A stretch of DNA of 64,000 nucleotides from Mytilus edulis (Eukaryota): positions 47,864,001 to 47,928,000 of the forward strand of contig NC_092354.1 of NCBI RefSeq assembly GCF_963676685.1, in the 5' to 3' direction. The position numbers and the translations under genes were made by a program. Each line of letters starts with the position of its first letter. Position 1 is the stretch's first letter. The notes under the pieces are model-generated. The model was not told the DNA's origin and searched no databases. It was given only the letters and a program-made list of their open reading frames with translations. Of the stretch, positions 12,935-30,345 are shown one piece after another.

Positions 12935-13160
12935 ATGATTCTGATGAACAGATATCTCCTCGTTATCATATTGTCGACTTATGCTCTTAGTGAAACAGTA
13001 TTACCAGGGGAGGTAACTGTTGCTGCCTTATTCCAAATACAGAATGCTGTTAATAATAAATGTGATGGAATTTCTCCACTCTCTGTGAAAAGTCTTGAAG
13101 CTGTCAAATGGACTTTTAGGAATTTAAATGAAAACAACTATATTCCTGGAGTTTCTATTG
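12935..13160 (+). CDS. Coding exon 1: signal peptide and start of VFT1
   Basis: Acceptor ttttacag ends 12933, ATG at 12935. MILMNRYLLVIILSTYALS is a hydrophobic leader, followed by PGEVTVAALF...SLEAVKW...YIPGVSIG, matching the class C pattern GD...LF...EAM...LLPNITLG. Donor G|gtaata, phase 1. Confidence 0.88.
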
Positions 13161-13788
13161 GTAATAACACAAATATGATAAGGCTAAAACATATAATATG
13201 AGTGATTACTATTACATCTGCGAAAAAAATGGAGTAGGTAAGAGGGGATTGTTTTTTTTTTATTTTACCATTTTATTTCACATTGAGTCTATGCATATGG
13301 GATGGATATATTGACTTTAACAGTGCTTATTGAAAAATGGCAAAAAAAACCCCTTCAGGGTACTAGGCTATTTATGAGAGGAAATACAATAGGTAGGGTA
13401 AAGTAATACAAGACTAACAAAGACCAGAGGCTCCTGACTTGGGACAGGCGCAAAAATGCGGCGGGGTTAATTATGTAAATGAGATCTCAACCGTTCCGCT
13501 ATACCTCTAACCAATGTAGAAAAGTAAACGCATAACAATAAGCATATTAATTTAGTTCAAGAGAAGTTCGAGTCTGATGTGCTGTGTTTCTGTTGTTCGT
13601 GTATGTTTTGTCTGTTTGTCTTTTTTCATTTTAAGTCATGGTGTTGTCAGTTTGTTTTTGATCTATGAGTTTGACTGTCTCTCTGGTATCTTTTGCCCCT
13701 CTTTTAGAGTGAAGGTGTGTTTTCACTTAAACTTTCGCACGTCTGGTGGTAGGTTTTCGGTAAACTTCACCAAAAAACTCCTATTAAT

Positions 13789-13899
13789 AGCTTTGAATCT
13801 ATTCAAAGCTTTACTTCTATCTATAGCTTTACTACTATTTATATAGCATTATTACTATTAAACACTTTACTTCTATGTATAGCTTTACTGCTATTTAAG
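13789..13899 (+). repeat. ~18-bp degenerate tandem repeat (~6 units) ending at the exon-2 acceptor
   Basis: agctttacttctatctat-like units at 13789, 13807, 13825, 13845, 13862, 13881. Confidence 0.75.
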
Positions 13900-14019
13900 G
13901 TCTAGAGGCTTACCCAACATGTGAGATGGTTGCAGAAGCCAGTGACAGGGCTGTTCATTTAATTTACAAAATCCGACAAGACAAACAAGACTCCTCCTTC
14001 ACAGATCCACCACTTGTAG
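13900..14019 (+). CDS. Coding exon 2 (absent from ORF track): GLEAYPTCEMVAEASDRAVHLIYKIRQDKQDSSFTDPPLV
   Basis: ttaag acceptor and G|gtaagt donor, 120 nt, phase 1-1. It supplies the G..xDTC-equivalent segment needed between exons 1 and 3. Confidence 0.85.
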
Positions 14020-15180
14020 GTAAGTAGTTTTTTACGGTAGGTTTGAGTAGAACGTAATTAAGCAGTTTATATTGACTGATGCTGAAAAGTTCCTCGCGTT
14101 ATATTTAACGATCCTAGTTTCGTTTCTTTTCAAGTAAATATCAGTGTCATCCTTCTAAAAATTTCGTAGTTAAACTTAACTAGACAGTTATCATAAAAAA
14201 GGATTCGCTGAATCTCTATTCTTGAAAATATATAGGGACCACTTGCTCATGCACATGACATATGTAAACACAAATCATTTGCCGTAAGTTTGTATGCTAT
14301 TCCGGAAACATAATCTGTTTCCTGTTACTAGTTGCGCTTTCCTTGTACTATTCCCAACCTTTAAACAAACCAGTATGAACATACGATAAATCGGAGCGAC
14401 GAGAACTCGTTTTGTCCTTAAAGAAATGACAACGATGCCTTCAAGTGAGTGACTACGTCAGTCATATTAAGAGACGATAACTGTGTATGATAAATATAAT
14501 ATTAGTTACATAGTGTATTAGTGATGATTAAATTCCATATATTGGATGAGAGTTTACTTTCACCCCATATGGCATTTACTAACCCCGTATATATCATATG
14601 AGGTCACTAGCACACGAACTTAACTTACCGGCTATCTTTATTTGTTTAATTTAGAACAGAGATGTCTCATTTGCAATCATACCACTTCCACTAGTCTGCA
14701 CAAAAAATCAATAACAATTTAAACAGATTAACTTTTAATACATTTAAATAACCAAATAGTGCCAAAGTCGTAAATCTACTACTAACCGTGTATTGAAATA
14801 AGCCCAACCTCCCTACTAACTTAATATGGAATATACACGGTCTCCGCGTGGATTCTTTTAACCAGTCATATTCCTGGAAATGTAGAGGAGGTAAAATGAT
14901 ATCAGTCAATCTATAGATATAACGACCGAGGGGCCTCCTACATACAATAGCTGATAAATACCGCAGACAACATGACCCGTTTAGAGAGAACAATGATCGC
15001 CAATAGTGACTACATGTCCGTAAGGCAATAATCAAAAGATCTGAAAATAAACTAATCTGAACTAATTAAAACTTGGATATCATCAATCTTATTAACGATA
15101 AAACCATAAACCCGCTGCAAATCAATGACAAACACTAACTTAATTCGTATTTACTTTGGAGAGGTCCAATATTGTCATAA

Positions 15181-16255: not shown

Positions 16256-16657
16256 TCATAAAGACTGGAACAGGATTAAAATTGATTGCGAGTGCACAGT
16301 TCTTCGCTAACCTTGATTAGCATAAAATTTCAAAGAAAAAATTGTAAAAAATCAACTTGAAAGCAATTGACTCATCACATCAAAACACACACTAAAAAAA
16401 ACTTACAAAAAGACAAAAGACACATACAAAGTACCGATACAAGGTACTTTTTTTTTAAAATCCAGTCCTATGCTTGTTACACTCAAATCGTACATTTGTT
16501 TAGTCGATTAGTAGTGTTTGTTAGCTGTACTTTTTTTTTGCAATATTGTTTTTTTTTGCAATTTTTTTTTTTTTTAAATTTTAGTTTTCTTTTAAAATTT
16601 AAAAATTTTTAGTTCTGTAAAATATATATCTTCTTAAATTATTGATATTACATTCAG

Positions 16658-16836
16658 CTCTGATAGGTCCTGGTTATAGTAGCGAAGTCCAGAAAACGTC
16701 GTACTTTTTAAGTTCCGAAAGAGCAGACGATAGATTATTACAAATTGGATTCTCCTCGACTGCTGCGTCACTAAGCAACACCAACATTTACAGCAATTTC
16801 TTCAGAGTTGTTGCAAGTGATGCCGTACAAATTGAG
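16658..16836 (+). CDS. Coding exon 3: VFT1 lobe 1 ligand-binding loops
   Basis: ttcag acceptor; ALIGPGYSSEV...QIGFSSTAASLSNTNIYSNFFRVVASDAVQIE; donor GAG|gtaaat. Confidence 0.92.
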
Positions 16837-17866
16837 GTAAATCTTTAATTCAGGGTATATAGTAATGTAAAATTACGGAACATCTATACTACTGAAGGAA
16901 TAGGAAGGTTTCCGTGAGCCGCATCTACTTTGAAACCCAAATAAAGTAGGAAATATATGGAATATATGACGTATAAATGTAGTGTTTGTACTTCCTAAAT
17001 TTGAATTTAAAATAGTCTTTTCCCCACGGAAAAGGCCAATTTTTGAAAAAAAAAATAACCCTATAATCCTTGTCTTATACGCTTTCGTACGCGTGCATGC
17101 TCAGTCCACGTACTGCCCTCCAAATTTAAAGACTCGTTGTTTCAACACTTGTCCAATTGTACCGCGATTATGCGGACATCTTCTAGTTTATCTTATTTGT
17201 CCAAAGGACTATAATCTTGTTATTGACTTTTCGTTCCGGAGTTTATTATTTTTCAACAGGTTGCCTACATTGTGATAAAACATGCTGGTACTCGGTTAAG
17301 TAAGAGCAATCGAATGAAAAATTAGCAAGCGGTTTTCAACAAAAGGTTAAGGTCAATGATCAGAAAGTTCTAATGATTAGAAATAGAACTGGACAAAACT
17401 GTACACTTTCCGTAAACATACGACAATATATTTTGCGAAAATGTTTGTAATAACTATGAGTTATAAAACTAACAAACTAGCTATACATATGAATTTGTTC
17501 AATAACTTTCCTGGTTATTCAGCGATCGATTCACAGGAATACTTAGCCGTAATTTGTCATTACAGCAAAGAAAAGTACAATAAAGATATTATTTTAGAAA
17601 GAGAAAAGAAAATAAGAATTATCAAGCTTACAATCGGTGTTAAAATAAAGAATTGGATAAACATAGATTGATTACAGAAATGAACGATAAGTTTACAGTT
17701 TACAATTAAATAGAACATACCTCCAGCCAGAGAAATACACAGATTGTACTTGTCTAGATAGAGAAATAAACAGCGAGTTGATGGTAGTGGTAAAGATAGG
17801 GAAATATACAGCGATTCGAAGGTACTTGTCTACTTGTCATAAACAGCGATTTAATTATACTATATA

Positions 17867-18065: not shown

Positions 18066-18995
18066 GTTATGATTTCTTTGATGACAGAGCTAAAGTGGAA
18101 CTATATTGCTATTATATACGATGATGATATTTACAGAGAAGAAGGCAAAGAGGCATTGATGACACGAGTGGCTAAAAGCTCGATATGTGTTGCCACTTCG
18201 TTTGTTCTTCCTATTGGTGCGGTCAGCTTAATACAGGTCAGAGACATTCTTCAGAAGATTATTACAAACGGAGAGAGTCCAATAAGTGGAGTTGTTGTGT
18301 TAACCAGCGGTGCACATGCAAATGCCATAGTTACAGCTGCATCCGCTTTAAAAGATACATTATCGGACCCTATTTCTTTTATATTTTCCGAAGCCATAGG
18401 ACTTTCCGATAGTTACTTTTCTAGTAATACAGGTACTGTATTTAAAGCATCAAAAGGTGCATACGTTGTTTCTCCACCGCAGATTCGTATACATGAATTT
18501 GAAGATTACTGGTTTAATACCTTTCGGAATGCTTCGAGAGTTGTCGAAGAAACTAAAACTAATACTTGGTTAGAGAAAGTCTATAAAGAATATTCGAGTT
18601 GTTCATCTTCAATATCAATGTGTTCAGAACTTAATTCGGAACAAATAGAAAAAGCTTCCCAAATGTCCTCCTGGACAAGCTATGCAATCAAAGCCGCTTA
18701 TGTCACAGCAAAGGTTTTAAAACAAGTTCACGATCGCTTGTGTTCAGGACAACAAGGAATGTGCAGTAACATGAAAAGCCAATTATACAACAATAAGGGA
18801 TCTCTTATAGAAGAAATGAATAGTTTGTCAATTAATTTTAACACAGATTTTACTAATGTTCCAGCAGCATTAACTAATATTTCTCTTTATTTTAATGATA
18901 CAAGTGATGCTTAGTTTACTGCAGGATTTCCTGATTACCAAGTTTATCAGTATAGAACATGTATGTCGGACCCGTCTACATTCTGTTTAGAGAAG
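18066..18995 (+). CDS. Coding exon 4: VFT1 lobe 2, with premature TAG at 18912-18914
   Basis: ttattag|VMISLMTELKWNYIAIIYDDDIY...SICVA...FIFSEAIG...FEDYW. The frame continues past the TAG as FTAGFPDYQVYQYRTCMSDPSTFCLEK to AAG|gtaaga; 930 nt. Confidence 0.9.
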
Positions 18996-19000
18996 GTAAG

Positions 19001-19203
19001 AAATAAACTCATCATAGATACCAAAATTATGTATTTGCGCCAGACGCGCGTTTCGTATACGAAAGGCTCACCAATGACGCTCGCATGACAAACATAATAC
19101 TAAAAAGACCAAATAAAGTACGAAGTTGAAGAGCATTGAGGACCATATATTCCTAAAATATTTGCCAAATACAGCTAAGGTATTATATTCCTGAGGTAGA
19201 AAA
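19001..19203 (+). mobile_element. Interspersed repeat (aaataaactcatcatagatacc family) starting 5 nt after exon 4
   Basis: Close match to 60183-60378; partial copies near 940-1012(-), 8700-8860, 31820-32060 and 55617-55698(-). Confidence 0.8.
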
Positions 19204-19426
19204 GATGGAAGCGACATCGAATGATAATACATGCAGAGTTTTGAAAAAGGTTTACTATGATAATAGGACAAGTCGTGACGAGGATGAGTTTCTATACAAA
19301 CAAATGTCTAACTTGTCTATGCCTAGCACGTTTCTATCAGACTTCACTCTAGTTTGACGCATTTTGTATATTTTCAGTTGTGCTGGTTATTTTATAACTA
19401 GTGCATAGTCCGATGATATCGATTAG

Positions 19427-21006
19427 GATTGCCTGGTATTCATTTTGACATCGTACGCAATGACATGTTTAAGAATGGCCTTATACTCCTTTTGACATAG
19501 TACGGTGACATGTTTTGTGATTGCCTTATACTCCTTTTGAGATAGTACGGTGACATGCTTTATGACTGCCTGATATTCCGTCTGACATCGTACGCGGTGA
19601 CATGTTTAAGAATGGCCTTATACTCCTTTTGACATAGTACGATGACATGCTTTATGACTGCCTGATATTCCGTCTTACATCGTACGCGGTGACATGTTTA
19701 AGAATGGCCTTATACTCCTTTTGACATAGTACGGTGACATGCTTTATGACTGCCTGATATTCCGTCTGACATCGTACGCGGTGACATGTTTAAGAATGGC
19801 CTTATACTCCTTTTGACATAGTACGGTGACATGCTTTATGACTGCCGGATATTCCGTCTGACATCGAACGCGGTGACATGTTTTAGAATGGCCTTATACT
19901 CCTTTTGACATAGTACGGTGACATGCTTTATGACTGCCGGATATTCCGTCTGAAATCGTACACGGTGACATGTTTTAGAATTGCCTAATATTCCTTTTGA
20001 CATAGTACGGTGACATGCTTTATGACTGCCGGATATTCCGTCTGACATCGTACGCGGTGACATGTTTTAGAATTGCCTAATATTCCTTTTGACATAGTAC
20101 GGTGACATGCTTTATGACTGCCGGATATTCCGTCTGACATCGTACGCGGTGACATGTTTTAAAAATGCCTAATATTCCTTTTGACATAGTACGGTGACAT
20201 GTGTTTGATTGGCTGATATTTCTTTTGACAAAGTACAGTGACATGTTTCATGATTGCCTGATATTCCTTTAGACATATAACAGGGACATGTTTTATAATT
20301 GCCTGATAATCCTGTTGACATAGTACGGTGACATGTTTTATGATTGCCTGATAATTCTTTTCACATTGTACGGTGACATGTTTTATGATTGCCTGATATT
20401 CCTTTTGACATAGTACGGTGATATATTTTATAATTACTTGATAATACTTTTTAACAAAGTACGGTGACATGTTTTAGGATTGCCTAATATTCATTTTGAC
20501 ATAGTACGGTGGCATGTTTTCGGATTTATTATATTTCTTTTGACATAGTACGGTGACATTGTGACATTCTTTATGATTACCTGATAGTTCTTTTTGACAT
20601 AGTACGGTGAAATGTTTTATGATTGCCTAATATTCCCTTTGACATATTACGGTGACATGGCTTATGATTGCCTGATAATTCCTTTTGATATAGTACGGTG
20701 AAATGTTTTACATGTATGATTGCCTTATATTATTTTTGACATAGCACGCTGATATGGTTTATGGTGGCCTGATAATTTTTTTGACATAGTACGGTGACAT
20801 GTTTTATGATTGCCTGATAATCCTGTTGACATAGTACGGTGACATGTTTTATGATTGCCTGATAATTCTTTTGACATAGTACGGTGACATGTTTTTTGAT
20901 TGCCTGATAATTCTTTTGACATAGTACGGTGACATGTTTTTTGATTGCCTGATATTCCTTTTTACAAAGTACGGTGACATGTTTTTTGATTGCCTGATAT
21001 TTTTTT
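19427..21006. repeat. 45-bp minisatellite (~35 units) in intron 4, with a 92-bp dimeric higher-order repeat in its 5' half
   Basis: Unit gacatagtacggtgacatgttttatgattgcctgatattcctttt; the 47-bp variant cgtacgcgg recurs every 92 bp (e.g. 19681, 19773). Confidence 0.95.
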
Positions 21007-21679: not shown

Positions 21680-23167
21680 ATCGGGACTTTTAACAACACT
21701 GAACTTATGATGGATAAATCAAAGATTAGAGAGTATGATAACACCGGAAATGACCTGCTATGGCCAAATATTAACTATGCGCAGTGTAAAGAGTCCAGAC
21801 GTTGTAGCTCGTGCATCTTACAGGAAGTCTATGATAAAGTCTACTTCCGGAATGGCGATCTTATTGTTGTCGGTATAGTTCCAGTTTATGATGGTGGCAC
21901 TGACGACCCATTAGCATGTGGTGTGATAAGGACGTCGTTAGGGAATTAACTAGTTGAGGCCATGGAATACGCTGTTACCCTGATAAACAATAAAACAGCA
22001 CCGTACGGACAACTGTTTCCGGGTAAATCTATTGGACTTTTAATTCTAAATAGTTGTGATCAGCCTTTACTCGCTCAATATAAATTGCTGTCAATTTTGA
22101 ACAACGGACTTTTATTGGATAATAATACAAGTGTCAATGTAAAAGGCAAACTGATTGGAATAGCTGGTCCTTATTCAAGCAGTATAAGTGTCGCGGTTTC
22201 AGATGTGTTATCAAAGTTTGGGTACGTACAAGTAGCGTATGCGTCGACTGCTGTCGATTTAAGTGACCGAAATAAATACCCTTACTTCACCCGAGTCTCC
22301 ACACCAGATAATAGACAAACTCAGGCTATGATGCGTATCATCAAACATTCAAAATACTACTCTGAATATATTCAATTCGTCTACAGTAAAGGCACATATG
22401 GTGAAGCCGGTCGTGACGCGCTAAGACAGGAAGCAATAAAAGCGGAAGTATGTATTGCACAGGAAATAGAAGTTGATGACGGAGAAAATTTCAATCTTAT
22501 TAAAGAGAAACTGCGGAAATATCCATTTGCAAAAATTGTCATTTTGTTTCTTCGTTCCCATCAAGTTGAACCAATAACATCAGCACTTAACGATATTGAA
22601 TATGGCGAATTCTTGTTTATAGGATCCGAAGCATGGGGGTTTAGGCCGAATGAGTTCTCAAATAAACCAAAACTGGTAGGTAGTATCATTTTGGCATTGC
22701 AATTACCTACCAATAACAACTTTACCAACTATTTAAGAAATAAAGACGTTTTAACTGACAAAAGTAATCCCTGGTTACTAGAATATATCGCTGCTAAATA
22801 CAACTGTCATGTAGATACTAGTTTCGACAAGACATTTACTTCATCTTGTGGGTCAAATTTAAAATTAGCAAGTTCTTCAACGTACGAACAGGAGATATGG
22901 ATATGTGCTTAACGCAATGCTGGCACTACTTTCCGGAACTAGCGAAGCGTTTCAAGAGTTATGCGGGTCCGCTTCTGCAACCTTGTGTGACCAATACTTA
23001 CTTAACCCAAAAATGTTAGGAACAAAGTTATCAAACAGAAGCTTGATGTCGACGGAAGTGGAAATCTTGTCAGTTTGTTTGACGAAAACGGTGATGGAAA
23101 CGTAGGTTACACAATCTACAACTTACAACGCAATAAGAATGACGCAAATAAAATAGAATACCAAAAA
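21680..23167 (+). CDS. Coding exon 5: end of module 1, Cys linker and nearly all of VFT2; one stop and two frameshifts
   Basis: ctatag|IGTFNN...CKESRRCSSC...GDLIVVGIVPVY...GN*LVEAMEYAV...GPYSSSIS...QVAYASTAVDLSDRNKYPYFTRVSTPD...FIGSEAWG...NPWL. After a shift: YVLNAMLALL...LCDQY. After a second shift: FDENGDGNVGYTIYNLQ...EYQK|gtaagt. Confidence 0.9.
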
Positions 23168-23816
23168 GTAAGTTAATTATGTTAACTGAAGCACACAAAG
23201 TAGTTTATCAAAAGGTTATTTATAAATCATGTCTATGGCGCAAATAAAGTAGACTATCGAAAGATGAGTTTATCATGTTAAAAGCAGTAGTGTATGCTGC
23301 ATAGTCTTGACTGCGGAGTATTAACATCGCAGTTTAAGGATGTTCGGTTTTCTTGTTTTCTTAACTGATTATAAGATTGTCCGGCTCCTCTGGTTTTATC
23401 CATTTGGTGCCATTTAAATTTTGAACCCTAACCCTTACTTTTCATTTTATCGGTTAATAAAATATAGTTTGAAAAGTGATTTTTTAAATCTTTCAAAATT
23501 TTGTATGATAGATAGATCAGAATGTCCTCTTTTGTTCTGTTATTTCAAGATCTAATATTGTTGAAATTAATGGGAGCTTACACCGTAATTTGGTAATTTG
23601 ATGATAAACCAAAAGTTATTTAAAGATTTCCCGAATTACCAGTCACGCAAATTCAAGAGACTACCATTTCTTACTTGAGTGTAACTTTGAAATGGTTAGG
23701 TCTGCTGGTTTTTCGGCCATGTTTTGGTGAACTCCAAATTGCATGATTCTTACAAAGTGTGGTACTTCTCACTATGATAGGTTTTACCATGTATACATAT
23801 ATAAAATCTTTTACAG

Positions 23817-23977
23817 GTAGGGACTTATCCTTTAGATGGTTCAACTTTTGACCTGGATGTGAACAGAATAGTAGAACCAGATGGAATAAATCTGCCTTCT
23901 GTCTGTCCAAACGACAGGGCGTGTAGTATGTGTAAAACAACTGGAATTGATTCGACGCCATCCCCTGCTCTTGCCAG
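23817..23977 (+). CDS. Coding exon 6: end of module 2, Cx5Cx2C motif and stalk
   Basis: ttttacag|VGTYPLDGSTFDLDVNRIVEPDGINLPSVCPNDRACSMCKTTGIDSTPSPALA; donor CAG|gtaaat, phase 2. Confidence 0.85.
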
Positions 23978-24086
23978 GTAAATATGCAATAGATATGCAG
24001 CCTGTCTGTCTAAACGACAAGGCGTGTAGTATATGTTAAACATTTGAATTTTTTTCGACGTCATCCCCTGCTCTTACCAGGTAAGT
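23899..24086 (+). repeat. 103-bp-period tandem duplication of the 3' end of exon 6 including its splice donor
   Basis: ctgtctgtc...tcccctgctcttgccag|gtaaat (donor 23978) is repeated as ctgtctgtc...tcccctgctcttaccag|gtaagt (donor 24081). Confidence 0.9.
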
Positions 24087-24163
24087 ACGATCAGCACGTT
24101 TCTTACCGCAGGTTTTGGTGAGGTTCGTGTTGCAAAGTTTTTATTTTGCTATGTTGTTGTTTG

Positions 24164-24627
24164 TTTTTATGCCCCATTTATGGGCATTATGTTTTCTGGT
24201 TTGTGCGTCCGTTCGTTCGTTCGTCCGGCCGTTCGTCTGTCCCGCTTCAGGTTAAAGTTTTTGGTCGAGGTAGTTTAAAAAAAAGTTTAAGTCCAATCAA
24301 CTTGAAACTTAGTAAACATGTTCCCTATGATATGATCTTTAGAATTTTATACCAAATTAAATTTTGATCCCTATTTCACGGTCCACTGAACATAGAAAAT
24401 GATATTGCAAAGTTCAGGTTAAAGTTTTGGTTAAAGTTTTTGGTCAATGTAGTTTTTGATGAAGTTGAAATCTAATCAACTTGAAACTTAGTAAACATGT
24501 TCCCTATGATTTGACCTTTTTAATTTTAATGCCAAATTAGAGATTTTATCCAATTTTCACGGTCCACTGAACATAGAAAATGATAGTGCGGATGGGGCAT
24601 CCGTTTACTGTGGACACATTCTTGTTT
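24164..24627 (+). mobile_element. Helentron-associated (HINE/DINE-1-like) non-autonomous element with two core repeats
   Basis: T-rich insertion site, short inverted repeat atgccc...gggcat, (gtcc/gttc)n microsatellite, duplicated core caggttaaagttttt...ccactgaacatagaaaatgata, end ggacacattcttgtt. Confidence 0.75.
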
Positions 24628-25277
24628 TTACTGTTGTTTATCTGGTGGTCTTTTTCTTTTTAAGCCATGGCTTTGTCAGTTTATTTGCAACTTGTTAGTT
24701 TGAATGTCACTACGGCATTTTTCTTTTCTTTATTTTTTGTCCATTATCCTTTTTTAAATTCATTATAATACCATTCAAACCAATTCATATCGTCATACTA
24801 TAAGTCACATGATAATGTACTATCGCCTTCTAGTATCAAACATGAAACCTTTTTACTTATAACATCAATATTATTATGTTTATGTTTGATTATCTAATAC
24901 CATTCTGTCTAAGGTTAGAGTTTCTTTTTGACATTTTCTTTATTTATATTTTATGTAAATTATGTCACAGATCAAACTTACTCGTTCAGTGTATGCTTAC
25001 TTGTTTTTGTTTTGATGTCATCCAATTGATATTTTAGGATACATCTATATATATACGCTATATTTATGCTCTGAATATGATTTTTAGTTTATAGTCACAT
25101 GGTTATTCCGGATAGCAGTGTTGTTCGTACCAATATCGCGATCAACAATTTGCTTTGAAAAAAAATAAAATTTGATAACAATTTAACATAACTATGCATT
25201 ATAATAAAGATAATTCTGACAAGCGTCACCGATTTGTTTGATATATCTAGAGATAGATAGTCATAAACAGACATATA

Positions 25278-25669
25278 AAGGGTGTGTGCTCCTCTATTTT
25301 TAAAATTTGTGCCAGATTTTTGAAATCCTCTGGTTTTATCCATGTATTGACATTAACAAATTTTGCCCACTTATCCCTACTTTTCTTTTTTTAATTTTAT
25401 TACATAAAGTGTAAACAGACTTATTTCAAAGTATTATAAAATCCTTGTTATTTTTTCATAGATTTTGAGACAAAAAGGTGCCAATGTTAAATATATGAAA
25501 AATCTAGAGAGAATTATTTCCCGCCAAATTTTAATGGCTTATATCTCGAAAACAAGCACAACGACCTTCCATTTTTTTCTGCTTTTTTAGTTTCTTTATT
25601 TATATACTATTTCTTCATAACAGCCATTTAAAAAGCTTGTTATTTTTAAAAAAAAAGTAGCGAACATCC
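25278..25669. mobile_element. Degenerate TTAA-type DNA transposon remnant; related fragment from 23337
   Basis: Right end agcgaacatcc|ttaa; shares tcctctggttttatccat with 23337-23450. Confidence 0.5.
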
Positions 25670-25673
25670 TTAA

Positions 25674-25940
25674 TTCAGTTCAGTGTGTTCAGTAGTTGTC
25701 GTTTGTTGATGTGGTTCATAAGTGTTTCTTTTTTCTCGTTTTTTATATAGATTAGACTGTTGGTTATCCTGTTGGAATGGTTTAACACTAATCATTTTGG
25801 GACCCTTTATAGCTTGCTGTTCTGTGAGAGCAATGGCTCTGTGTTGATGACCGTACTTTGACATATAATGTTTATTTTTACAAATTGTGACTTAGATTGA
25901 GAGATGTCTGATTGGCAATCATACCCCATCTTCTCATGTC
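25674..25940 (+). mobile_element. SINE-like interspersed repeat; copies near 37120-37375(-), 54480-54610(-), 59282-59535(+)
   Basis: Shared ttgtcgtttgttgatgtggttcataagtg...ccgtactttgac...ttgtgactt...ttggca.tcatacc. Confidence 0.7.
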
Positions 25941-25941
25941 T

Positions 25942-27700
25942 ATATTTAAATATGTTTACTATATACTTTACAGTGATGACGATGGTGGTACTGTAAAATC
26001 ATATTTAATTATTTTTACTCCATGTTTTACAGTGATGAAGATGGCGGTACTGTCAAAGCATATTTAATTATTTTACTCCATGTTTTACCATGATGAAGAT
26101 GGCGGTACTGTCAAAGCATATTTAATTATTTTACTCCATGTTTTACAGTGATGAAGATGGCGGTACTGTCAAAGCATATTTAATTATTTTACTCCATGTT
26201 TTACAGTGATGAAGATGGCGGTACTGTAAAAGCATATTTAATTATTTTACTCCATGTTTTACCATGATGAAGATGGCGGTACTGTCAAAGCATATTTAAT
26301 TATTTTACTCCATGTTTTACAGTGATGAAGATGGCGGTACTGTCAAAGCATATTTAATTATTTTTACTCCATGTTTTACAGTGATGAAGATGGCGGTACT
26401 GTCAAAGCATATTTAATTATTTTACTCCATGTTTTACCATGATGAAGATGGCGGTACTGTCAAAGCATATTAAATTATTTTACTCAATGTTTTACAGTGA
26501 TGAAGATGGCGGTACTGTCAAAGCATATTTAATTATTTTACTCCATGTTTTACAGTGATGAAGATGGCGGTAATGTAAAAGCATATTTAATTATTTTTAC
26601 TCAATGTTTTACCATGATGAAGATGGCGGTACTGATATGGTATGTTTAATTATTTTTACTCCATGTTTTACAGTGATAGGATGGCGGTACTGTAAAAGCA
26701 TATTTAATTATTTTTACTCCATCTTTTACAGTGATGAAGATGGCGGTACTGCTTTAGCATATTTTATTATTTTTACTCAATGTTTTACCATGATGAAGAT
26801 GGCGGTACTGTTATAGCATATTTAATTATTTTTACTCAATGTTTTACCATGATGAAGATGGCGGTACTGTAATAGTATATTTAATTATTTTTACTCCATG
26901 TTTTACAGTCATAGGATGGCGGTACTGTTACAGCATATTTAATTATTTTTACTCCATGTTTTACAATGATGAGGATGGCGGTACTGCTTTAGCATATTTT
27001 ATTATTTTGACTCCAGGATTGACAGTGATGAAGATGGCGGTACTGTTATAGCATATTTAATTATTTTTACTCAATGTTTTACAATGATGAAGAGGGCGGT
27101 ACTGTTATAGTATATTTAATTATTTTTTCTCCATGTTTTACAGTGATAGGATGGCGGTACTGTTACAGCATATTTAATTATTTTTACTCCATGTTTTACA
27201 GTGATGAAGATGGCGGTACTGTTATAGCATATTTAATTATTTTTACTCCATGTTTTAGAGTGATGAAGATTGTGGTACTGTTATAGCATATTTAATTATT
27301 TTTACTCCATGTTTTACAGTGATGAAGATGGCGGTACTGTTTAAGCATATTTAATTATTTCTACTCCATGTTTTACAGTGATTAAGATGGCGGTACTGTT
27401 ACAGCATATTTAATTATTTTTACTCAATTTTTACCATGATGAAGATGGCTGTACTGTTATGGCATATTTAATTATTTTTACTCCATGTTTTACAGTGATG
27501 AAGATGGCGGTACTGTTTAAGCATATTTAATTATTTCTACTCCATGTTTTACAGTGATTAAGATGGCGGTACTGTTACAGCATATTTAATTATTTTTACT
27601 CATGTTTTACCATGATGAAGATGGCTGTACTGTTATGGCATATTTATTTATTTTGACTCTATGTTTTACAGTGATGAAGATGACGGTACTGTTATAGCAT
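25942..27700 (+). repeat. 58-59-bp minisatellite, 30 units, built from the exon-7 splice acceptor plus the first ~29 nt of exon 7
   Basis: Unit tttaattatttttactccatgttttacag|tgatgaagatggcggtactgttatagcata; the last unit runs directly into the TM exon. Confidence 0.95.
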
Positions 27701-27781
27701 TAGGAGTTATTGTTGGAATCTTAGTGTTGATTCTAGTTGTTGCTATGGTTGCCCTGTTACTGTGTTATCGTAAAATGAAAG
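27672..27781 (+). CDS. Coding exon 7: transmembrane helix
   Basis: ttttacag|(S)DEDDGTVIALGVIVGILVLILVVAMVALLLCYRKMK(G)|gtaatg. A ~25-aa hydrophobic run is followed by a basic stop-transfer segment; phases 2 and 1 fit both neighbours. Confidence 0.88.
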
Positions 27782-28132
27782 GTAATGTAATCTAAGCCAC
27801 TGCTTAAAAAGTGTTTGCGAATTTTTTGGTTTGTTTTCAATTTTTAGCTCTAAGATTTATTTGCCATGTTTATGTATTTTGAAAATAAATTAGTATAACC
27901 CATAAATTTGATGCTTATTTAGTAAGGTAAACTTACTTTATGTAGCAACCTAAAATGTTTTTCGTTTGTTTGTGTGCAGGGGTGTGGCTATGTTTTGGGT
28001 TATTCTTGTCGCTTTTATGGGGTGTTGATTTTTTTTGTTTTATTCAGTATATGGTTTTATTGTTGCTTTTAGAAAGAAACTGATTTTATATTCAATTTAT
28101 TTTCTACCTTACTTATTCCCATTTTATTATAG

Positions 28133-28677
28133 GCGAAACGGTAAAAGAAGACTATAATTACCTCAATGTAATTGATGATCCGAACTATAGACACGTGGCA
28201 AATGTGACCAATCATAATCGTGAAGGTCGTAGTAACGGGATATATTCTGTAGAGGACACCACAACTGATACTAGGGGTCCTCCACCACGAAATACCGAGT
28301 CCTATCTAAGTCCGAGTAGTATAACAAGAGATACCTATCTCATGCCTAAAGACGAACAATCTAACAAAAATGATACAGATCCTAAAAATGTAGAGCTTGC
28401 ATATGCCAGTAACTCTGAACCAGGGAGAGCAGACATGTCTTATATGAGTGAAACTGAATTGAAAAAGCTGGAAGGATCGAAAAGTAGTAAAGAGGTGACA
28501 CGTGAAATGCAAACAACTGGTATACCAGCCTTGCCAACTTCCAATGTCCATCATGTTACTCCTATACCACACAAAGTAACACAACAAACATCAAAAGTAC
28601 AGAACTCACCACCGCTAGCTCCATCGCATACACGACCTCAGCAGATAGCAGTTGTGTCAGGTATTCCAAAGACATAA
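28133..28677 (+). CDS. Coding exon 8: disordered cytoplasmic tail with tyrosine motifs, natural stop TAA
   Basis: Long pyrimidine tract then tatag|(G)ETVKEDYNYLNVIDDPNYRHV..., in frame with ORF 28195-28677; S/T/P-rich with 8 Tyr. Confidence 0.85.
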
Positions 28678-28745
28678 ATCGAAATAAGATGCAAAGTGGA
28701 ATGTTGGGTTAAACTGGAAATATAAGGACATTCATTATTTCGGTA

Positions 28746-28846
28746 GTTTTGTGATATATTTTTATACATACAACATTTCGATCGTTTTGTGATATATTTT
28801 TAAACATACAACATTTCGATCGTTTTGTGATATATTTTTATACATG
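28746..28846. repeat. 38-bp tandem repeat (~2.7 units) just after the stop codon
   Basis: gttttgtgatatatttttatacatacaacatttcgatc at 28746, 28784, 28822. Confidence 0.9.
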
Positions 28847-29221
28847 CAATATATGAATAATAACAATTGACTTATAGGAAGACAACTTTTAGTTTATCCA
28901 AAGAGTGAAATTGCAAAAATATCGAAATCCAAGAAAAATTCCAAACGGAAATTCTCTTATCAAATGGCATAATTAAAAGCCAACTCACATTAAACGAAAA
29001 ACAACTACCATATTCCTAACGAAGTACAGGCATTTCCCTGTGTATAAAATGGTGGGTAAAACCTAGTTTAATAGCTAGCTTAACCTCACACTTGAATGGC
29101 AGTCGTGCATAAGCCATTCTATTGATAGCAGATTTAATCTATTCATAAATATTTTGAAAATGCTAAACAGAGCAGTTTTGTCTCTGTTTGGTTTCAATTC
29201 ACGCAATAATCACCATGTCAC

Positions 29222-30345
29222 ATACTAGACGTAGCTATAGAACATCCTCAAATAGCCTATACCCCTACCAGACGTAGTTATACAACATGCTTCAACAGTT
29301 TATACCCCTACTAGACATAGTTATACAACATGCTCAAATAGCTTATACCCTATTAGACAAAGTTATACAACATGCTCCTATAGTTAATACACCTACTAGA
29401 CGTAGTTATACAACATGCTACAATAGTTAATACACTTACTAGACGTAGTTATAAAACATGCTCCAATAGTTGATACACCTACTAGACGTAGTTATATATT
29501 ACGATTATATTGGAGCAGGATCTTCTTACCCTTCCGGAGCACCTGAGATCATCCCCAGTTTTTGGTGGAGTTCATGTTGCCTAGTCTTTAGTTTTCTATG
29601 TTTTGTCTTCTGTACTATAATTTGACTGTTTGTCTTTATATTTTTAGCCATAGAGTTGTCAGTTTTTTTTTAATCTATGAGTTTGACTTCCCCTCTGTAA
29701 TCTTTCGTCTCTCATTTCTACCCCTACAAGACCAGGAGATACTACACGTCATTATAGAACATGCCAAAATAGTTTATTCCCCTACTGGACGTAGTTATAG
29801 AACACGAATCACTCCAATAGCTTATACGCCTACAAAACCATGGAATACTACACGTCGTTATAGAACAAGAGACACTCAAATAGAGTATACCCCTACAAGA
29901 CCAGTGAATACTAAACGTAGTTTAGAACAAGAAACACTTCAATAGCTAATAATCCTACAAGACCAGGGAATACTACACGTTGTTATAGAACAAGAGACAC
30001 TCAAATAGAGTATACCCCTACAAAACCAGTGAATACTAAACGTAGTTTAGAACAAGAAACACTTCAATAGCTAATACTCCTACAAGACCAGGGAATACTA
30101 AACGTAGTTATAGAACAAGAAACACTCCAATAGCTTTACCCCTACAAGACCAGGCAATACTACACGTCGTTATAGAACAAGAAACACTCCAATAGCTTAT
30201 ACCCCTACAAGACCAGGGAATACTACACGTCGTTATAGAACAAGAAACACTCCAATAGCTTATACCCCTACAAGACCAGGGAATACTAGACGTAGTTATT
30301 TTACAAGAAATACTCCAATAGCTTATACCCAACAAAGGCTAGGGA
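29222..30345. repeat. Compound minisatellite: 43-bp units (29222-29497) and related 63-bp units (29718-30345) split by an inserted repeat
   Basis: gacgtag period 43 (29228, 29271, 29314); gaaacactcc period 63 (30181, 30244). Confidence 0.9.

Follow-up and report, generated by a model that had tools for sequence, protein, structure and literature searches.

The intron 6/exon 7 junction of a receptor gene in Mytilus edulis is the last of 30 tandem copies of the same splice-acceptor region. The array lies in the 64,000-nucleotide stretch of DNA analyzed here (the window; coordinates are window positions unless the contig is named) and has the structural features of a "mirage"-type splice-junction minisatellite, a kind of repeat that is already known. 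Judged from the sequences of a sister gene and of orthologues in other Mytilus species, it is a young expansion of a real splice junction and is confined to this gene copy. In functional terms the array is probably extra intron, neutral or mildly harmful, rather than a regulator of splicing.

A 30-unit array at the intron 6/exon 7 junction

Tandem Repeats Finder identified the minisatellite with a period of 59, 30.0 copies, 90% matches and a score of 2692, and likewise called a 235-bp higher-order period within it. Cutting the array at a conserved GGCGGTACTG core yielded 30 units with a spacing of 58 or 59 bp, each composed of approximately 31 nt of AT-rich intron 6 end closing in TTTTACAG and of 28 nt that resemble the start of exon 7.

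25942–27700, + strand: minisatellite, 30 units of 58–59 bp; the intron part comprises a pyrimidine tract, a candidate branch site and AG

Both approaches bear out the description in an earlier note on this DNA of 30 tandem 58–59-bp units made of intron end and exon 7 start. The AG is kept in 20 of the 30 units, namely in unit 30 and in 19 upstream units (1, 2, 4, 5, 7, 8, 10, 11, 13, 14, 17, 19, 21–25, 27, and 28). It is replaced by CCA in eight units (3, 6, 9, 12, 15, 16, 26, and 29) and by CAA in two (18 and 20), a recount that returned the same 19 retained and ten lost (cca/caa) upstream AGs as the earlier note.

Six units searched against the whole 1.37-Gb assembly had no match outside the array itself, which rules out an origin from a dispersed repeat or transposon. 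In the public, DNA-like run X15, contigs lay on all bins of the array at a depth similar to that of the flanks, and one contig spanned 27572–27850, from units 28–30 into exon 7, with no differences in its exon part. Moreover, P0183, a protein predicted in a second M. edulis assembly, has at its C-terminal end a 20-residue peptide encoded by units 4 and 10. Since the X15 contigs cover the array and bridge into exon 7, and P0183 contains array peptide, the array as such is not an assembly artefact. An artefact, or one copy of a dispersed repeat family, has nothing in its favor except that tandem arrays are, in general, easily misjudged in long-read assemblies, and given the unique genomic locus, the bridge into exon 7 and the array peptide in an independent assembly we consider such an explanation extremely improbable.

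The commonest 29-mer of the array unit had no exact match in public metagenome contigs. No Rfam family matched the interval 23000–29500 in a search for structured RNA, and the inverted repeats found were only AT-rich chance pairs. A high-copy element (25283–25941) adjoins the array and stops where the array starts. At its left edge (25942–25953) the array has 12 nt of AT sequence that are perfectly palindromic (ATATTTAAATAT); it is conceivable, as a speculation, that this was a stalling or hairpin site that seeded the first duplication.

The host gene encodes a single-pass receptor

The open reading frames upstream of the array match the Pfam family ANF_receptor (PF01094) with 53.9 bits in exon 4 and 106.1 bits in exon 5 (gathering cut-off, 25.4 bits), and a profile-free search of 1.8 billion proteins returned many bivalve proteins of approximately 1000–1300 aa with two ANF_receptor domains. 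Searches were run with single exons or public proteins, and sequences were compared one exon at a time. The exon map, which was guided by the transcript-derived relative P0151, is as follows.

12995–13162, 13900–14021 and 16657–16845, + strand: first exons, approximate, placed with P0151 as guide
18066–18995, + strand: exon 4, first Venus-flytrap domain; TAG at 18912–18914
21680–23167, + strand: exon 5, second Venus-flytrap domain; TAA at 21947–21949 and three deletions
23817–23977, + strand: exon 6, 161 nt, Cys-containing stalk, ending in phase 2; donor GT at 23978–23979, seen in a spliced contig
23978–27671, + strand: intron 6, 3694 nt (approximately 967 nt in the sister gene), of which the array makes up approximately 1.7 kb
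27670–27671, + strand: acceptor AG of unit 30, the authentic one; exon 6 is spliced to 27672 in an RNA-like contig, and the frame is open into the TM helix
27672–27781, + strand: exon 7, 110 nt, acidic juxtamembrane segment, TM helix and basic stop-transfer residues; donor GT at 27782–27783
28133–28677, + strand: exon 8, cytoplasmic tail and stop codon

The encoded protein consists of a pair of Venus-flytrap domains followed by a short stalk with Cys, a single TM helix and a tail of approximately 180 aa, and its exon 7 matches the TM region of the Mytilus orthologues. Exon 8 lacks 31 residues that are present in the sister copy and in full-length Mytilus orthologues. Because P0197, a model from another assembly, shares this deletion, we regard it as a feature of the copy and not as an error. 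Pfam searches of the 1286-aa sister protein and of relatives found ANF_receptor twice, and neither a 7TM domain (PF00003) nor NCD3G (PF07562). The lack of a 7TM domain and the single TM exon rule out a class C GPCR (metabotropic glutamate receptor), and the public names "metabotropic glutamate receptor 6/7/8", mGluR 6/7/8 and "GRM4" are therefore misleading.

Disabling lesions lie upstream of the array

Comparison with the sister copy, which is open, reveals two nonsense codons in the host copy, a TAG in exon 4 (18912–18914; CAG in the sister) and a TAA in exon 5 (21947–21949; GAA in the sister). Exon 5 additionally contains two frameshifts, caused by a 5-bp deletion after 22901 and a 1-bp deletion after 23011, as well as an in-frame 3-bp deletion after 22592. 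These four lesions make the host copy a null allele in the reference assembly. Hence, the choice of acceptor cannot alter the protein in this haplotype, in which two nonsense codons and a frameshift are located upstream.

Three protein models from an older M. edulis assembly (P0185, P0183, and P0197) have the diagnostic residues of this copy. In P0185 the positions of the two nonsense codons are occupied by K and E, P0183 is open through both frameshift sites, and P0197 is open at the 1-bp site and starts just downstream of the 5-bp site, where it is uninformative. With these open counterparts, the lesions look like alleles rather than a fixed loss. P0183 is open and yet ends in array-coded residues, so that the array cannot have arisen after the frameshifts.

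A nearby sister gene and orthologues give the order of events

The sister gene is inverted and located approximately 50 kb downstream, beyond the end of the window.

Contig 47940341–47955415, − strand: open sister gene, RefSeq XP_071140197.1, 1286 aa

It is collinear with the host gene over more than 20 kb, with 94–96% identity in exons and approximately 82–89% in introns. Its intron 6 of approximately 967 nt has a single junction, to which one array unit aligns, and there is nothing opposite the 1.7 kb of array. The sister without the array fixes the order, i.e., the junction came first and the array second, and the array arose later than the duplication; the array-less copy 50 kb away thereby dates the array to after a duplication with a dS of approximately 0.14.

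The start of the TM exon reads S-[DE]-E-[DE]-[GD]-G-T-V-I-A-L-G in the orthologues of M. galloprovincialis, M. trossulus, M. californianus, and M. coruscus. Since the same acidic motif followed by GTVIALG occurs in these four other species, the exon-derived half of the unit represents ancestral exon sequence. A birth of the exon 7 start from satellite DNA is ruled out by the identical exon start of the array-less orthologues.

At sites that distinguish the two copies, M. californianus and M. coruscus are equidistant, and M. galloprovincialis and M. trossulus agree with the sister. These affinities place the duplication inside the M. edulis species complex or immediately before it. Host and sister differ by a dS of 0.136 with a dN/dS of 0.24, and with M. 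coruscus as outgroup 33 amino-acid changes since the duplication fall on the host copy and 36 on the sister. On the basis of dS, dN/dS and the even distribution of amino-acid changes, the loss of the host copy looks recent; from the substitution counts we infer a neutral phase of, roughly, at most one sixth of the time since duplication.

Internal evolution of the array

Unit-to-unit identity is highest at lags of three and four, and the array is made up of 3-unit and 4-unit higher-order repeats. Units 2–11 form three-unit blocks (AG, CCA, AG), units 13–24 form four-unit blocks, and units 24–26 are near-identical to units 27–29. The mean identity among units is 0.89, corresponding to a mean difference of 11%. 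Unit 1 is the most diverged (0.79 identity to the others) and retains ancestral intron letters.

The CCA variant reappears at the higher-order period, and the ten AG-less units trace back to approximately two or three mutations that were later amplified together with neighboring units. Stop-bearing and AG-less units were likewise duplicated along with their neighbors, which indicates that the internal units were free of coding or splice-site constraint. Nothing in this pattern points to selection on internal units. The divergence among units would be a weak clock, because arrays may mutate faster than flanking DNA.

Upstream acceptors, transcripts, and public gene models

Read in the phase of exon 6 (AG + T), all 19 upstream AGs run into a stop after 2–31 codons, and each of them, if used, truncates the protein ahead of the TM helix. 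Unit 30 alone runs through the TM helix and the basic stop-transfer residues to reach the donor at 27782. The early-stop peptides given in the earlier note for units 1, 27, and 28 were reproduced letter for letter, and its statement that only unit 30 continues into the TM helix holds as well. The pyrimidine content from −20 to −3 is 0.78 in most upstream units versus 0.72 at the authentic site.

RNA and DNA runs were compared over 21900–27850. In run X1 (RNA-like contigs from a sister organism), a contig of 749 nt is spliced from 23167 to 23817 and from 23977 to 27672; at the second joint, the three letters CAG fit either side. The contig has a G at 21947 and inserted letters at both frameshift sites, and is a mosaic of both gene copies at copy-distinguishing sites. 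As it is free of these three lesions, it indicates that the final AG is used in an open relative, whose allele may or may not carry the array. P0197, which is of this copy type and whose allele may likewise carry the array or lack it, has exon 6 joined to the final acceptor as in X1, and a protein search for transcript-derived proteins with an array-coded tail gave only this normally joined model.

In run X2, which is RNA-like, exons are covered and unique intron is not. Its exon contigs are of this copy's type at a depth of 3–7, and a short contig at 27665–27713 appears unspliced. Within the same run, 80 nt of a 110-nt contig lie inside the array, in units 12–13 (26606–26685, depth 2.9, similar to that of exons); unit 12 is also where a 223-aa RefSeq model begins. 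Run X24 consists of raw RNA-seq with the species label of the best-matching DNA run, and approximately one fifth of it was read. Its depth is zero on the array and on exon 7, the few exon 5 reads have the letters of the sister copy, and expression is too low to reveal rare isoforms. Joints from exon 6 to an upstream AG are listed in none of the runs compared over 21900–27850. Taken together, the RNA data give no support for regular use of the pseudo-acceptors, and rare use is compatible with these thin data.

Two public models are derailed at the array. P0183 leaves exon 6 for an AG within the array and stops there. RefSeq XP_071138599.1 (223 aa, from this assembly) reads MAVLIC and then continues with exon 7; from its protein sequence, it would correspond to an ATG at 26623 and a donor at 26640 joined to 27672.

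26623–26641, + strand: ATG of unit 12, followed by the sole good donor-like site of the array (ATG|GTATGT, GT at 26640)

The array hence misleads annotation, with one public protein ending and one RefSeq protein starting there.

Origin and possible function of the array

The array began as a 59-bp tandem duplication across the intron 6/exon 7 boundary in one copy of a recently duplicated receptor gene and reached 30 units as blocks of one, three, and four units were added through slippage or unequal exchange. The spliceosome most likely keeps to the last AG. This AG should be favored because it alone precedes a real 110-nt exon with a donor, in keeping with exon definition and with the published analogues. 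At most, low-level transcripts with premature stops would come from the 19 pseudo-acceptors, and what makes the host copy null in this assembly lies upstream of the array. Several observations count against regarding the array as extra intron, namely that the pseudo-acceptors are seemingly as strong as the authentic site and are transcribed first, that P0183 ends and XP_071138599.1 starts in the array, and that X2 has a contig within it; the allele behind the spliced X1 contig may also lack the array.

The earlier note had proposed that the array is a set of decoy acceptors whose copy number could tune membrane-bound versus secreted or NMD isoforms. Substantial use of the pseudo-acceptors would yield a secreted, TM-less ectodomain or NMD substrates, in a ratio set by the copy number and the loss of AGs. 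Nineteen intact 3′ splice-site modules with equal or better pyrimidine content, each truncating just ahead of the TM helix, speak for this proposal, as do P0183, which ends exactly in this way, and the X2 contig within the array. P0183 is, however, a prediction and not a transcript, no read or contig in the runs compared joins exon 6 to an upstream AG, and the sister copy and all orthologues manage without the array. The units also evolve unconstrained, and the published analogues splice normally (PMC3087553). With the lesions situated upstream, the sole spliced contig using the final AG, the raw RNA-seq of X24 at zero depth on the array, and published arrays leaving splicing undisturbed (PMC3087553, PMC1557585), the proposal went unsupported, and we hold it to be improbable. 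Slightly better placed, yet still unlikely, is the second suggestion of the earlier note, according to which the array was the first disabling hit: mis-splicing would have silenced the copy, and stops and frameshifts would have followed under relaxed selection. The part concerning relative age stood up in that the array occurs on the frameshift-free haplotype represented by P0183 and is thus not younger than the frameshifts, and the host copy does carry four disabling lesions. That the array crippled the gene is disfavored by the 33 changes in the host versus 36 in the sister and by the dN/dS of 0.24. Moreover, the 11% difference among units is approximately five times as large as the short neutral phase would permit at the background rate, although arrays may mutate faster.

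The model XP_071138599.1 raises the further possibility that the array serves as the start of a new short gene, with a transcript beginning at or before unit 12, spliced from the donor at 26640 and encoding a 223-aa protein of TM helix and tail. In favor of this are the RefSeq model itself, its use of the one good donor-like site within the array, and the position of the X2 contig (26606–26685) on the same unit 12. Yet this contig passes the donor at 26640 unspliced, the joint from 26640 to 27672 was not seen in the runs compared, and the first six residues of the model result from reading the unit out of frame. Choosing the longest open frame downstream of stops is common in annotation pipelines, and we consider a new gene at this position very improbable. 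The best reading is that the host is a dispensable young gene copy and that the array is an ordinary, if large, junction minisatellite.

Comparison with known junction repeats

Boundary-spanning tandem repeats in amphioxus Adh3 (Canestro et al. 2002) were given the name "mirages", as related in a later report that added further cases from the amphioxus globin genes BflGb6 and BflGb9 (Ebner et al. 2010, PMC3087553). BflGb6 amplifies the 3′ end of an intron together with the start of the exon in 3–6 units of 150–160 bp. In amphioxus mirages many, but not all, units keep their AG or GT, RT-PCR revealed regular splicing, and the clusters undergo concerted evolution that spares the edge units (PMC3087553). 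The mussel repeat is likewise a head-to-tail array of minisatellite size (period 59, 30.0 copies) whose unit includes both intron and exon and whose terminal unit is the authentic junction in register. The splice dinucleotide occurs in many but not all units (20 of 30), and the units evolve in concert with a diverged edge (mean identity 0.89; 0.79 for unit 1). The likeness to amphioxus thus extends to the boundary-spanning unit, partial retention of AG or GT, diverged edges and an authentic copy at the exon side. In contrast to BflGb6, the mussel array has 30 units of 59 bp and resides in a bivalve. Its host also differs from those in amphioxus in being one copy of a young duplicate pair with a null allele in the reference, and normal splicing past the array, demonstrated by RT-PCR in amphioxus, is weakly documented in the mussel.

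In the human F7 gene, the first unit of a 37-bp repeat spans the exon 7 donor, and the pseudo-sites are functional but silent (PMC1557585). This intron 7 VNTR resembles the mussel array in that a terminal unit spans the boundary and the authentic site stands beside identical pseudo-sites. In F7 it is the donor that is repeated and the first copy that is used, whereas the mussel array multiplies the acceptor and has its authentic copy last; a closer analogue of F7 is the donor-side duplication at 23899–24084 in mussel intron 6. Human segmental duplications include repeat expansions in one of two young paralogues, also at exon-intron boundaries, and repeats at such boundaries are able to create new splicing patterns (PMC2812944). 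Minisatellite growth in one of two recent paralogues is common to these cases and the mussel gene. The human work is a survey of primate genes.

The array is a rare natural test bed for the choice of the spliceosome among many equal 3′ sites. NAGNAG acceptors have AGs 3 nt apart that share a branch site and tract, and the choice between them changes one codon. As in the mussel, several AGs compete at one intron end. The mussel AGs are, however, 58–59 nt apart, each with a tract of its own, and the upstream ones truncate the protein; this spacing and the separate tracts rule out the NAGNAG or tandem acceptor class.

Further repeats in the host gene

A second repeat spans the opposite end of intron 6.

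23899–24084, + strand: second junction repeat, 103-bp unit, 1.8 copies, spanning the exon 6 donor; one copy in the sister

The second copy of the donor (CAG|GTAAGT, GT at 24081) is closer to the consensus than the first and is followed by the letters that start the intron of the sister; splicing from it would meet a stop immediately. With the 103-bp donor repeat and the acceptor array, both ends of intron 6 carry junction repeats specific to the host copy. An 18-bp array (13798–13898; 5.5 copies, 69% matches) terminates at the exon 2 acceptor (AG at 13898–13899) and, being common to both copies, predates the duplication. The host gene thereby contains three junction-linked arrays. Two arrays span a junction, compared with approximately 0.24 expected in a rough estimate from the unit sizes, 14 junctions and 15.7 kb.

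Mussel junctions could be preferred seeds of minisatellites and open, array-bearing alleles could at the same time shed a soluble ectodomain via the upstream AGs, a combination to which we assign only a slim chance. If it were true, the length of the array and the distribution of its AG-less units would act as an inherited setting of the balance between anchored and secreted receptor, and the locus would be a natural 30-site model of 3′ splice-site choice, the mirror of the F7 donor model. On its own, the array is one more junction minisatellite, and it is the sister gene, the two-ended repeats and the annotation errors that make the locus useful.

Intron 6 also holds two very high-copy elements (24089–24685 and 25283–25941), on both of which the summed contig depth ranged from thousands to hundreds of thousands in every run compared; the sister lacks the last approximately 115 bp of the element at 25283–25941. 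Relative to the sister, the host copy has a 115-bp insertion just past the exon 4 donor (19020–19135). In intron 4, a 45/92-bp minisatellite of approximately 34 copies occupies 19423–21001, and its counterpart in the sister is longer (approximately 47 + 12 copies).
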